A program made the translations under genes and the position numbers. This document shows, piece by piece, positions 56,232 to 59,215 of a stretch of 64,000 nucleotides of DNA (positions are counted from its first letter, which is position 1; every line of letters starts with the position of its first letter). The stretch comes from Obrimoposthia wandeli (taxonomy: Eukaryota). Where the stretch lies: assembly GCA_977020255.1 (NCBI GenBank), contig CDROCS010005135.1, positions 62,001 through 126,000 of the forward strand, in the 5' to 3' direction. The notes under the pieces are model-generated. The model worked only from the letters and a program-made list of their open reading frames with translations. It did not search any database and had not been told where the DNA came from.

Positions 56232-56305
56232 GGCGCGTTGGCAGAGTGGCTATGCAGCGGATTGCAAATCCGTGTACCTCGGTTCGACTCCGGGACGCGC
56301 CTCCA
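56232..56305 (+). tRNA. tRNA-Cys(GCA)
   Basis: 74-nt cloverleaf, CCA end. Confidence 0.96.
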
Positions 56306-56412
56306 AATTTTGTACTAACGGTCATGTTACATTGGCAGACCGTTATAAAGATGGTGTCTAACCGCTTTTTATAAAGCACATTGGTTAGGAGCATCGCAAT
56401 AAAGAATTGCGT

Positions 56413-56499
56413 GCCCTGGTGGTGGAATTGGTAGACACAAGGGATTTAAAATCCCTCGGCGTTCGCGCTGTGCCGGTTCAAGTCCGGCCCGGGGCACCA
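56413..56499 (+). tRNA. tRNA-Leu(TAA)
   Basis: Identical to the 47871 copy. Confidence 0.96.
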
Positions 56500-56541
56500 T
56501 CTATTAAAGCCTGAGATTCTCTGAAAAGAAGGTTTCAGCAT

Positions 56542-56632
56542 GCGACACTAGGTCAGCTGATAGAACGCAACCTTGCCAAGGTTTAGGTTACGGATAGCTT
56601 CTCGAAGATCGAGAGCCTCGTGTGTCGCTCCA
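56542..56632 (+). pseudogene. tRNA-Gly(GCC)-like element with ~15 extra nt in the T-arm
   Basis: 91 nt; acceptor GCGACAC/GTGTCGC-TCCA intact; hairpin TCTCGA-AGA-TCGAGA replaces the T-loop. Confidence 0.8.
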
Positions 56633-56738
56633 AATTTTGTACTAACGGTCACGTTACATTGGCAGACCGTTATAAAGATGGTGTCTAACCGCTTTTATAA
56701 AGCACATTGGTTAGGAGCATCGCAATAAAGAATTGCGT

Positions 56739-56825
56739 GCCCTGGTGGTGGAATTGGTAGACACAAGGGATTTAAAATCCCTCGGCGTTCGCGCTGTGCC
56801 GGTTCAAGTCCGGCCCGGGGCACCA
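56739..56825 (+). tRNA. tRNA-Leu(TAA)
   Basis: Identical copy in the tandemly duplicated unit. Confidence 0.96.
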
Positions 56826-56867
56826 TCTATTAAAGCCTGAGATTCTCTGAAAAGAGAGTATCAGCAT

Positions 56868-56958
56868 GCGACACTGGTTTAGCGGGTAGAACGCAACCTT
56901 GCCAAGGTTGAGGTTAAGGCTAGCTTCTCGAAGATCGAGAGCCTCGTGTGTCGCTCCA
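56868..56958 (+). pseudogene. Second tRNA-Gly(GCC)-like element with the same T-arm insertion
   Basis: 91 nt; D-stem GTTT/GAAC and anticodon stem CAACC/GGTTG pair; 3' portion identical to the 56542 copy. Confidence 0.8.
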
Positions 56959-57391: not shown

Positions 57392-57994
57392 CTACTTCTT
57401 AAGCAGATAATTTACTAGCGAAAAATACTCTTCGTAGCTTTTAATTTTGTCCGGTTTAACAACGTATTTGTTATTCACAATCACACCGGGGACGCCCGTT
57501 AATGTACTTGACTTAAATTGCTTATCGAAGCGTTTTTGCATTGAATCAACGGCGAAGCCATTGTACGCCGCATCGAAATCCTTCGCATCAATACCATTAT
57601 CTAGGAAGACCTGACGCAATTCCGCTTCGTCTTTAGGTGTTTGTTTAAGATCATGTATTTGTCTAAACATCATCGGAATCATTTTTTCATCAACGCCTAG
57701 TGTAACCATAGTGGCATAAGCTTTTGCCATTGGCACCGCCATATCATTTCCCATAAAGGCAACGTGAATTTTCTGGAAATTGGCGGTGTCCGGAATGTTA
57801 TTTTTAAGCGCACCGATAACATTCTCGAACTTGTAGCAATGTGGGCAGTAAAAAGAAAAATATTCTGTCACTGTTGGCTTAGATGATTTTTCTAAATCTA
57901 ATGTTGTGTAGTAATCACCATCTGTAAATTGAACTGCTTGTGCAGAAACACTGAGCACTAGAGTTGCAAACAGCGCAAATAATTTTTTCATCAA
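57392..57994 (-). CDS. dsbA: Thiol:disulfide interchange protein DsbA
   Basis: Signal peptide, [11 protein letters not shown] active site, [11 protein letters not shown] cis-Pro motif. Confidence 0.93.
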
Positions 57995-58125
57995 TTCTTC
58001 TCCAATTAAGACAGGTAATCGTGTAAACGTAATTCATTCAATACAATGAATGAGGCACACAAAAAACGCGTCTTTTTAAAACGTAAAATAGGGTTAAAGT
58101 TTGGTTTGGTAAAAGTAAACGGAGG

Positions 58126-58488
58126 CTAAACGATTGGAGGTTTATATAGCGCTCTTGCAAATGCACTGGTAGTCATGTCTGCTTCGGTACGTATTAAAGC
58201 GAAGCTATAAGGCTGCAATAGGATTTTGGTCGCGGATTCAGTGACAGGAAAACTGAGTAGGCACATCGCACTACAGCAGTGATGAATGGATCCTATCTCT
58301 TCAGGCGGTTGGTTTTTATCGTAATTTGCACTGGTGAAATGGACGGTGGCAACCGTTGTGTGTTCTGCGGTAGCCGAGATAGATGTCTCTTGAATTGGTA
58401 TCAGCGGTGCACAGTTTGCAACACTAGCTAGCATTAAAGCTATTAGTGTGACGCACGTAATCCAAATTGTCCGAGTCATCTTCAACAT
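58126..58488 (-). CDS. Secreted His/Cys-motif protein with C-terminal KPP (DUF2946-like upstream ORF)
   Basis: Signal-like N-terminus, HHCCSAMC, ends RALYKPPIV; start ATG 58488 or 58479. Confidence 0.75.
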   Translation of the reverse strand: MLKMTRTIWITCVTLIALMLASVANCAPLIPIQETSISATAEHTTVATVHFTSANYDKNQPPEEIGSIHHCCSAMCLLSFPVTESATKILLQPYSFALIRTEADMTTSAFARALYKPPIV

Positions 58489-58825
58489 CAAATCTTCATC
58501 ACGGGAGTGAAGGAGGCCCAATAATAACCGACAAGTGGGCGTTAGTGTCAAGATCATTTATAAAACAGTTCGATTCAGGTAGAACATTTAAAATATCACA
58601 CACTGAATAGCCACCTGATTAAAGAAATATTTTGTTGTTAACTCATAATCTCAATCCGTTGACTTCGGGACGCGCCTTCATACAATTGTGATATGGAACA
58701 TTTCAATCTATTCTGTTTTATTCTATGCGGCTTGGAAGGCTAATGGTTTATTGTGCGATATGTGGCCAGAGTAATCGTCTACGTACGCTTTTAAAGCACT
58801 TGAATCAAAACAATAAAATTTTTTA

Positions 58826-58994: not shown

Positions 58995-59081
58995 GCCCTG
59001 GTGGTGGAATTGGTAGACACAAGGGATTTAAAATCCCTCGGCGTTCGCGCTGTGCCGGTTCAAGTCCGGCCCGGGGCACCA
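58995..59081 (+). tRNA. tRNA-Leu(TAA)
   Basis: Identical copy. Confidence 0.96.
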
Positions 59082-59141
59082 TCTATTATTTATCGTTACC
59101 AATAAGCGATAAAGTTAAGTTAATGACTTAGCCATAAATAT

Positions 59142-59215
59142 GGCGCGTTGGCAGAGTGGCTATGCAGCGGATTGCAAATCCGTGTACCTCGGTTCGACTC
59201 CGGGACGCGCCTCCA
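59142..59215 (+). tRNA. tRNA-Cys(GCA)
   Basis: Identical to the 56232 copy. Confidence 0.96.

Follow-up and report, generated by a model that had tools for sequence, protein, structure and literature searches.

Exported leader peptides that sense conditions outside the cytoplasm

Nascent-chain sensors of extracytoplasmic conditions respond to protein export (SecM, VemP and MifM) and, as recognised more recently, to copper (CutF and CruR). In the pairs SecM-SecA, VemP-SecDF2 and MifM-YidC2, a pause of the exported chain exposes a downstream ribosome-binding site and is released by the activity of the downstream gene itself. The window analysed here, a stretch of DNA of 64,000 nucleotides, carries a leader ORF upstream of dsbA that the first-pass annotation had put forward as a ribosome-arrest sensor controlling DsbA translation. 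This leader has no sequence relationship to SecM, VemP or MifM, and release of its putative pause by DsbA activity is proposed here hypothetically.

Closer in design is CutF of Rhodobacter capsulatus, encoded in cutFOG (PMC9973294; bioRxiv 10.1101/2025.02.05.636593), a small Sec-exported leader whose CxxxC motif and proline-rich C-terminal pause site have candidate counterparts in the window leader, and which is likewise encoded by the first gene of its operon. In CutF a paused ribosome opens an mRNA helix that hides the Shine-Dalgarno sequence of the next gene, and an analogous helix is predicted for the window leader; the CutF authors further suggest that the pause ends once a disulfide forms in the exported nascent chain (PMC9973294; bioRxiv 10.1101/2025.02.05.636593). 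By the operational criteria that Ozturk et al. (2023; PMC9973294) set for CutF-like proteins, which include a length below 150 aa, a Pro-Pro within the last 15 residues and an N-terminal signal peptide, the window leader would count as one of them: it has 120 aa, Pro-Pro at residues 117-118, a CxxxC motif and a same-strand dsbA 134 nt downstream, and its N-terminus combines a charged start with a hydrophobic core when read from the sequence and forms a helix at residues 2-24 when modelled. The two systems differ in their pause motif, which is (Y/F)(R/K)PPI-x-stop in the present family and PPP in CutF, in the gap of 71-134 nt and in the helix, whose 5' arm lies at the stop codon in the family, and in the target, which is a DsbA oxidoreductase here and a multicopper oxidase in the case of CutF.

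CruR (Bp2923) of Bordetella pertussis (PMC9426467) resembles the window leader in its predicted export, its Cys motif, its fixed ruler and its C-terminal Pro-Pro near the stop, and also in heading an operon across a long gap. Its ruler is longer, however, with 45 ± 2 residues between CXXC and RAPP in CruR/DUF2946 proteins (PMC9426467) as against 40 in the Vibrionaceae family, and the window leader, with CCxxxC (its CxxxC as in CutF) and LYKPPIV, has neither the CXXC nor the RAPP of CruR. For CruR the read-out is termination by Rho, which copper relieves or triggers (PMC9426467). The first-pass annotation had likened the ORF to the DUF2946 leaders, yet the window leader gave no match to Pfam DUF2946 (PF11162) at E <= 1. 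Five of 44 relatives matched weakly (best score 15.3 bits, best E 0.0022) and none reached the gathering score of 23.7, so that membership of DUF2946 did not hold. The top-scoring Atlas look-alike was a cluster named DUF2946.

The closest curated model is the CopL family (NCBIfam CopL_fam, NF033807), in which Xanthomonas CopL lies upstream of copAB; CopL operons as described encode copper oxidase or resistance genes, not DsbA. The window leader gave no match to this model. Its relatives scored 18.6-30.5 bits (E = 5e-7 to 2e-3) over most or all of their length, which leaves the window protein and all DsbA-linked relatives below the cutoff (<=30.5 bits against 40). When the family profile was compared with P0146 of P. 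sagamiensis, a CopL-family protein that passes the threshold, hhalign returned a probability of 96.3% (E = 1.6e-9), and this true member ends in SLFRPPIA, like the (Y/F)(R/K)PPI end of the family. The below-cutoff scores and the hhalign match together indicate a remote homologue of CopL_fam and not a threshold member.

A link between leaders of this general kind and DsbA has been listed once. Fujiwara et al. (2025; PMC12992588) list DsbA-family genes downstream of uORFs ending in RAPP or RGPP, and report an enrichment of secreted or membrane xxPP uORFs in front of oxidative protein folding genes. Like the present leaders, these uORFs before DsbA-family or thioredoxin genes are small, encode secreted or membrane products and carry a C-terminal xxPP. 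Their DsbA class is listed there without further analysis, and since RAPP or RGPP was a strict requirement for selection, the YKPP/YRPP family described here would have escaped that survey. In the literature we found no paper in which DsbA of Vibrio is tied to a leader of the CutF, CopL or DUF2946 kind, the survey of RAPP/RGPP uORFs (PMC12992588) being the nearest. In view of that listing, the statement of the first-pass annotation that no such system had been described for dsbA is true only in part.

Taken at the level of sequence, the leader family looks like a new branch of the copper-sensing, ribosome-pausing CutF/CopL/CruR leaders that has become attached to a disulfide-bond enzyme. Such a family would extend the nascent-chain sensor design to a disulfide-bond catalyst.

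A Vibrionaceae leader family with a fixed Cys-to-Pro-Pro spacing

All features described here lie on the minus strand. The leader gene occupies 58488-58126 (120 aa and stop), as given by the ORF list and by a family of about 45 relatives, and its first ATG (58488) agrees with the family N-terminus M-x-K-x-x-R/H-T/K-I-W. The N-terminal sequence, MLKMTRTIWITCVTLIALMLASVANC, when read by eye shows a positive start (K3, R6) followed by a 17-residue hydrophobic core. Together with the structural model and the family conservation, it points to a putative Sec signal peptide at approximately residues 1-25 (58414-58488). In the AlphaFold model this region is a helix with pLDDT 88-94 and is the sole confident part; the model of the whole leader has a pTM of 0.29 and shows no fold for the mature part, which fits the expectation for a leader peptide. 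Residues 69-76, HHCCSAMC (58284-58261), form a candidate metal- or thiol-sensing motif, of which the family form is (H)xCCxxxC. The C-terminus reads RALYKPPIV, and the candidate pause site Y-K-P-P-I-V-stop spans 58146-58126, with Pro117-Pro118 at 58140-58135 and the stop codon at 58128-58126. Between Cys76 and Pro117 there are exactly 40 residues. The ORF, its signal peptide (from sequence reading), both motifs and the 40-residue distance were thus found as the first-pass annotation had stated them.

The window leader had no Pfam or NCBIfam match in the family scans, and no further leader of the same type was found within the window. An index search by words (2 relatives) and a GTDB scan (2 species) had suggested an orphan ORF, a view overturned by an exhaustive profile (HMM) search, which returned 46 matches, nearly all of 100-155 aa and aligned over most of their length. 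The resulting relatives, about 45 in number, all come from Vibrionaceae, and a metagenome scan with a subset alignment added just one more contig of a single relative already known. Common to the family are the export signal, conserved throughout as (R/K)T(I/V)WIT...L.AL.LSS, the (H)xCCxxxC motif and the end (L)(Y/F)(R/K)PPI-x-stop. Of 44 relatives, 37 have the CxxxC motif, and in 34 of these 37 it stands exactly 40 residues from the Pro-Pro (range 39-42), while the sequence in between is poorly conserved. C72 is near-invariant in the alignment; at a semi-conserved Cys of the family further upstream, the window leader has Tyr. The Pro-Pro is the sole invariant column pair (44/44), and in 40 of the 44 relatives exactly two residues separate it from the stop.

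Judged by this conservation, the 120-aa ORF is a real gene. It carries the hallmarks of the CutF/CruR class, namely an export signal, a Cys motif, a fixed spacer and an invariant Pro-Pro near the stop, and this assignment is supported by the alignment; Y-K/R-P-P-I, which is neither RAPP nor PPP, is a candidate arrest motif. The family signature is unusually clean, with a 40-residue ruler, an invariant Pro-Pro two codons before the stop and a predicted anti-Shine-Dalgarno sequence at the stop codon. Since the family occurs in cultivable species, among them V. alginolyticus, V. campbellii and V. diabolicus, in which its annotation is just 'hypothetical protein', the leader-dsbA system is directly testable.

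Linkage to a probable second-copy dsbA and likely transcription of the unit

The gene downstream of the leader, at 57991-57392, encodes a Vibrio-type DsbA of 199 aa with the active site CPHC within FYCPHCY and a thioredoxin-fold DSBA domain (Pfam DSBA, E = 7e-24). It shares about 61% identity with DsbA of V. cholerae (structure 1BED; E = 7e-73), and its score against the NCBIfam DsbA equivalog model, 167 bits, lies under the cutoff of 279. It is probably an extra copy; in Vibrio sp. MACH09, the DsbA of the module is accompanied by a second DsbA (68% identical), apparently on the same 3.34-Mb contig.

The distance from the leader stop to the dsbA ATG (57991) is 134 nt, and that to an in-frame TTG (57994) is 131 nt, the latter being the gap given by the first-pass annotation. 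Across lineages the gap ranges over 71-134 nt, and in half of them it is 71-88 nt. A Vibrio-type DsbA of about 199 aa lies directly downstream of the leader in 10 of 13 sampled lineages, in which the flanking genes are unrelated, so that the linkage suspected across Vibrionaceae was borne out; in the other three, the leader heads a cusC/cusB or a DUF411 (CopG-type) operon. Mean identity is 69% among the module DsbAs and 30% among the leaders, and the two divergences correlate (r = 0.80). By these comparisons, the leader and the gene for the probable second DsbA are a unit conserved across Vibrionaceae.

One way to read this linkage is that the leader is a free-standing periplasmic protein, for instance a partner of the DsbA paralog that binds copper, or its dedicated substrate, in which RPPI serves as an interaction motif without any role in cis. 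A signal peptide, conserved Cys and His residues and a constant position beside a periplasmic oxidoreductase would suit such a protein, and CutF was itself first proposed as a copper-binding component (PMC8456105). We nevertheless consider it distinctly improbable, given that the sequence between the motifs varies while its length is held at 40 residues, that the mature part has no predicted fold and that leaders of the same type head the unrelated cusCB and DUF411/CopG operons. The fixed distance from Pro-Pro to stop, where the mRNA is predicted to pair with the ribosome-binding site of the next gene, argues in the same direction.

The likely promoter of the leader-dsbA operon, read from the sequence, consists of TTGACA (58551-58546), a 19-nt spacer and TATTAT (58526-58521). 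Its hexamers and its 19-nt spacing are kept in five lineages despite differing spacer sequences; the consensus promoter scan missed it because it allows spacers of 16-18 nt only. In the 19-nt spacer we saw no convincing dyad of a MerR/CueR-type operator. An intrinsic terminator with an 11-bp stem, five G-C pairs and a T-rich tail follows dsbA at 57382-57356, and the terminator scan found no intrinsic terminator or attenuator between leader and dsbA in the window.

The gap itself contains a weak candidate promoter, TTTACC, 17 nt, TATTTT (58113-58085), from which dsbA might mainly be transcribed, leaving the leader irrelevant to DsbA levels. Vibrio sp. UBA2441 (lineage L001) shares both hexamers with the window, separated by a different spacer sequence. 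Against this stand a match at only 8 of 12 consensus positions, absence from the scan output, gaps of 71-88 nt in several lineages, the failure to recognise the element in lineages other than these two and the conservation of the two-gene unit as a whole. The gap promoter was rejected on the grounds that it is weak and conserved in two lineages only, and the reading built on it is extremely unlikely.

Also in the gap, the nested AU-rich hairpin UCAUUCA-UUGUAU-UGAAUGA (58053-58034) reported by the first-pass annotation is present in sequence and fold, with arms TCATTCA at 58053-58047 and TGAATGA at 58040-58034. Every lineage has some gap hairpin, of unrelated sequence.

Predicted pairing of the leader end with the dsbA translation start

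The dsbA Shine-Dalgarno region, AUUGGAG (58006-58000), has its core GGAG at 58003-58000, 8 nt before the ATG, and in the free mRNA the predicted probability that this core is unpaired is 0.0-0.01. The partner named by the first-pass annotation was CUCCAAU in the Pro-Pro-Ile codons (58139-58133). This is indeed the exact complement, and a match that is somewhat unlikely by chance, since a 7-mer complementary to a GGAG-containing window arose in 0.9% of dinucleotide shuffles of the surrounding 142 nt and in 6% of shuffles when the same test covered the whole uORF and gap. It is, however, a minor predicted partner, with a pair probability of 0.11 in the window ensemble as against 0.43 for the region from the stop to +17, and in L001, the nearest relative outside the genus, only four of the seven positions pair, without a compensating change. 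The Pro-Pro-Ile codon pairing was therefore rejected as a conserved element, though the 7-bp match as such exists.

The favoured partner, in both the minimum free energy (MFE) structure and the ensemble, is CCUCC directly after the stop (58125-58121). In both, CUCC (58124-58121) lies opposite GGAG (58003-58000), while UGAU over the start codon is paired to AUCG (58134-58131). A stop-proximal partner of the Shine-Dalgarno sequence, at or just after the leader stop, was predicted in eight of ten lineages and was not seen in L001 and L014. When the region from stop-6 to stop+17 was set against the dsbA translation start with RNAduplex, the combined p-values were 4e-4 (shuffles) and 3e-6 (other positions), figures that overstate independence because the lineages are related; the duplex of the window is modest, at -9.2 kcal/mol with p = 0.18 (shuffles) and 0.03 (other positions). 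Between L010 and L015 there are compensating changes, with UAA/UAAAC replaced by UGA/UCAAAC and UUCCU/AGGAA by CCUUC/GAAGG. Folds of the whole region were not stabler than shuffles (z = -1.0 and 0.0).

When a ribosome footprint was masked at the Pro-Pro or at the stop, the mean predicted accessibility of the Shine-Dalgarno sequence rose from 0.12 to 0.31, while control masks gave 0.11-0.13. At the window locus the same masks left it paired (0.00 to 0.02-0.05). A third possible partner found in the MFE structure, CUUUU-A-CCAA (58115-58106), lies beyond the footprint of a paused ribosome and would account for this failure. The proposal that a stalled ribosome unmasks the dsbA ribosome-binding site was thus supported in so far as the Shine-Dalgarno sequence is predicted to pair with the ribosome-covered end of the leader, whereas the predicted unmasking is weak in the window.

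On this evidence we favour, with a probability of about 0.58, a reading in which the 120-aa ORF acts in cis as a CutF/CopL/CruR-type leader and shares one transcript with a second-copy Vibrio-type dsbA, made from the promoter at 58551-58521. The pause is what we infer, as are its signal (copper, thiol redox state or both) and the direction in which it would regulate. In the mechanism envisaged, the leader would be exported co-translationally, and with CCxxxC, 40 residues upstream, already outside the ribosome, a ribosome at K-P-P, two codons before the stop, would pause. The length of the pause would be set by the fate of the exported Cys residues, that is, by Cu(I) binding or by a failure to become oxidised. 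A ribosome held at the leader end would cover the stop region, including CUCCAAU (58139-58133) and CCUCC (58125-58121), which would otherwise pair with the dsbA Shine-Dalgarno sequence and start codon. A longer pause, by masking these pairing strands, is proposed to allow more dsbA translation.

The same sensor could instead have a transcriptional read-out as in CruR, in which a ribosome paused at the Pro-Pro shields a Rho site in the gap and its release leads to termination before dsbA. In nine of ten lineages the gap opens with 60 nt that are rich in C and poor in G (27% C and 8% G in the window), the window gap of 134 nt is long, as is that of 162 nt between cruR and bfrG (PMC9426467), and weak unmasking at the window locus would be in keeping with it. 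Rho alone, however, hardly explains the complementarity between stop region and translation start or its compensating changes, and gaps of 71-88 nt in half of the lineages offer scant room for a Rho loading site; we therefore regard termination by Rho as unlikely. A plain translational coupling, with neither pause nor sensing, would also work in principle: in a helix that joins the stop region to the dsbA start, the 5' arm overlaps the stop codon, and any ribosome terminating there would open it. Such coupling would leave the invariant Pro-Pro, its two-codon distance, the 40-residue Cys ruler and the export signal unexplained, and on that account seems very improbable.

The favoured reading, that of a cis-acting sensor leader, could be taken further by supposing that the leader is a monitoring substrate of DsbA. 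DsbA would oxidise the Cys residues of the exported nascent chain, and this oxidation or folding would pull the chain and release the pause at the Pro-Pro. We hold this extension to be doubtful. If it were true, low disulfide capacity or thiol-blocking copper would lengthen the pause and yield more of the extra DsbA, forming a feedback loop of the SecM-SecA type for oxidative protein folding, conserved across Vibrionaceae. The family could reveal whether translation of DsbA is set by the thiol-redox capacity of the periplasm, by copper or by the two together, and it bears on the CutF-derived proposal that disulfide formation in a nascent chain is the force that releases a pause.

The pairing between stop region and translation start was also predicted beyond dsbA, in the cusC-linked family member L012, which clearly has the same design (p = 0.01). 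A similar but weaker pairing was found in L009 (p = 0.095).

The leader gene and its Vibrionaceae family

The leader ORF (58488-58126, minus strand of the window, 120 aa) is separated by a 134-nt gap from dsbA on the same strand (ATG at 57991, end at 57392, 199 aa), whose product was identified as DsbA by its Pfam match (E = 7e-24) and CPHC active site and shares ~61% identity with V. cholerae DsbA (structure 1BED). A strong terminator lies 3' of dsbA (57382-57356) and none was found in the leader-dsbA gap by a terminator scan. The sequence features from which the first-pass annotation had proposed a ribosome-arrest uORF were all present: an N-terminus that reads as signal-peptide-like, an HHCCSAMC motif at residues 69-76, a C-terminus reading RALYKPPIV, a stretch of exactly 40 residues separating Cys76 from Pro117, a CTCCAAT element (58139-58133) exactly complementary to ATTGGAG (58006-58000), and a TCATTCA/TGAATGA hairpin (58053-58034). 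The public gene call of the leader (P0001, 143 aa; window 58126-58557, minus strand) begins at ATG 58557, which lies 5' of the -10 box (58526-58521); as ATG 58488 is the start that fits the family, this call is probably over-extended.

A word-index search returned only two relatives of the window leader. An HMM search run exhaustively over 1.84 billion cluster representatives yielded 46 matches to the leader profile, nearly all of 100-155 aa and aligned over most of their length; the named relatives belong to the genera Vibrio, Photobacterium, Enterovibrio, Grimontia and Aliivibrio, most of them annotated as 'hypothetical protein'. The alignment conserves a signal peptide, a semi-conserved upstream Cys, (H)xCCxxxC, a LALI patch and an (L)(Y/F)(R/K)PPI-x-stop end, at an overall identity of only 20-55%, and its sole invariant columns are the two prolines. 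In 34 of 37 sequences the distance from the second Cys of CxxxC to PP is exactly 40 residues, the full range being 39-42, and exactly two residues follow PP in 40 of 44 relatives. Fixed length with free sequence between sensing motif and C-terminal PP was described for CruR, where the ruler is 45 residues rather than 40 (Roy et al., PMC9426467). Such a spacer is more in keeping with a nascent-chain device than with a folded protein; an AlphaFold model built from the alignment was confident only in the signal helix (pTM 0.29).

The window leader matched no Pfam or NCBIfam model and lacks the CXXC and RAPP of DUF2946. Only five of 44 relatives matched that family, all sub-threshold (the best scoring 15.3 bits, where 23.7 is required); some members are nevertheless labelled DUF2946 in UniProt. 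The closest curated model was CopL_fam (NCBIfam NF033807), which relatives matched over most or all of their length, again below cutoff (E = 5e-7 to 2e-3); the window leader is a threshold member of neither model. The family profile also matched P0146 (E = 7e-7; hhalign probability 96.3%), a true, threshold-passing CopL-family protein with a CCSQPLC motif and an SLFRPPIA end. In length, PP and downstream gene the window ORF agrees with the definition of 'CutF-like' proteins (Ozturk et al. 2023, PMC9973294), its signal peptide being read from the sequence only. Taken together, these matches and rules make the family a distant branch of the CutF/CopL/CruR class that is specific to Vibrionaceae. 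As P0146 is from P. sagamiensis, the closest sequenced species, these genomes carry several paralogous leaders of the class.

Gene neighbourhoods and the second DsbA

Gene neighbourhoods were looked up for 13 family members. The linkage to dsbA noted in the first-pass annotation held in 10 of these, where the leader is followed directly, after 71-134 nt, by a DsbA gene (complete copies ~199 aa) and the flanking genes are unrelated, but not in the other three, two of which head cusC/cusB-type operons and one a cytochrome-c-like gene followed by DUF411 (CopG-type domain). At locus L006 (2812-4539), the family member P0009, which ends in LFRPPIA, is separated by 278-308 nt from a downstream protein of 186-196 aa that carries a CSTCH haem-binding motif and matches no Pfam family; a DUF411 (CopG-type) gene comes next. 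The same leader type may here precede a further copper-related operon.

The DsbAs of the unit are mutually 63-87% identical and their leaders 25-54%; the two divergences correlate (r = 0.80), which indicates that leader and dsbA are inherited together. Vibrio sp. MACH09 encodes the unit's DsbA and a second DsbA, 68% identical, apparently on one 3.34-Mb contig (L014, P0227), so that the former is an extra copy there, as it probably is generally. Two Vibrio-type DsbA genes, 62-75% identical to that of the window, were seen both in MACH09 and in V. paucivorans (P0161, P0260).

In the window the unit lies within a tRNA array (56232-56958 and 58995-59215, both plus strand), with Cys, Leu, Leu and Gly on one side and Leu and Cys on the other. 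tRNAs of this set also adjoin it in Vibrio sp. UBA2441 (tRNA-Cys; L001 162-235) and MACH09 (Gly, Leu, Cys; L014 2354-2704) and are absent beside it in P. sagamiensis (L002), which suggests either an old position of the unit or repeated insertion beside this tRNA cluster.

Predicted pairing of the leader stop region with the dsbA translation start

The first-pass annotation had paired the Pro-Pro-Ile codons (CUCCAAU) with the dsbA Shine-Dalgarno region (AUUGGAG). The match is exact in the window, and an exact 7-mer complement to a GGAG-containing stretch occurred in 0.9% of local dinucleotide shuffles, but it is not conserved. In UBA2441 (leader 55% identical, DsbA 85%), where the Pro-Pro-Ile codons are CCCCCCAUC and the Shine-Dalgarno region is ACUGGAG, only four of seven positions pair, with no compensating change; this pairing was thus rejected as a conserved element, CCU-CCA-AU being simply common Pro-Pro-Ile coding in these loci.

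For each of 10 lineages, the RNA from the last 60 nt of the leader through the gap to nt 25 of dsbA was then folded. The Shine-Dalgarno was predicted to be paired in nearly all, and in 8 of 10 its main predicted partner lay within stop-12 to stop+17 nt of the leader stop; L001 and L014 had no stop-proximal partner. In the window, CUCC (58124-58121) pairs in the predicted fold with GGAG and AUCG (58134-58131) across the dsbA start codon, the stop-proximal region taking a 0.43 share of Shine-Dalgarno pairing and the Pro-Pro-Ile-Val codons, just 5' of the stop, 0.11. RNAduplex analysis of stop-6 to stop+17, PP codons excluded, against the dsbA start yielded combined p-values of 4e-4 relative to shuffles and 3e-6 relative to other positions, which are optimistic because the lineages are related. 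Short-gap lineages (L008, L010, L015 and L016) had the strongest duplexes, with compensating changes in both helix arms between L010 and L015; the cusC-linked L012 showed the same design clearly (p = 0.01) and L009 a similar but weaker pairing (p = 0.095). Whole-region folds were not unusually stable.

Masking a ribosome footprint at PP or stop in silico raised mean Shine-Dalgarno accessibility from 0.12 to 0.31, and control masks were without effect. At the window, where the stop-proximal duplex is modest (-9.2 kcal/mol), the mask left the Shine-Dalgarno paired in the prediction, a third partner (58115-58106) being out of reach of the footprint.

Proposed regulation of dsbA

Leaders of this class, namely CutF, CruR and CopL, are already published. 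The first-pass annotation's statement that no such system was described for dsbA needs narrowing, as DsbA-family genes are among those that a 2025 survey places downstream of RAPP/RGPP uORFs, though it does not analyse them further (PMC12992588); the literature searched contained no mention of the YK/RPPI leader family or its 40-residue ruler, of a conserved two-gene unit of leader and second Vibrio-type DsbA, or of the helix between stop region and dsbA translation start.

In the mechanism that we infer, including the pause, its signal and the direction of regulation, the operon would be transcribed from a putative promoter, TTGACA-N19-TATTAT (58551-58521, minus strand). This is kept, with its unusual 19-nt spacer length but varying spacer sequence, in five lineages (the window, L001, L002, L004 and L014), the remaining five having different regions upstream of the leader. 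A 19-nt spacer is characteristic of promoters activated by MerR/CueR, but no clear dyad was seen in this one. The leader would be exported co-translationally, so that with the ribosome at K-P-P the CCxxxC motif, 40 residues back, would sit immediately beyond the exit tunnel. Pause duration would be set by the state of the exported cysteines, whether copper-bound, reduced or oxidised, by analogy with CutF (bioRxiv 10.1101/2025.02.05.636593), and a ribosome held at the leader end would keep the stop-proximal anti-Shine-Dalgarno single-stranded, allowing translation of dsbA. The relatives heading cus and DUF411/CopG-type operons point to copper as the putative signal. DsbA activity itself might release the pause, as in a SecM-like feedback loop. 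A CruR-like, Rho-dependent read-out is a possible alternative, since in 9 of 10 lineages the gap opens with a C-rich, G-poor stretch.
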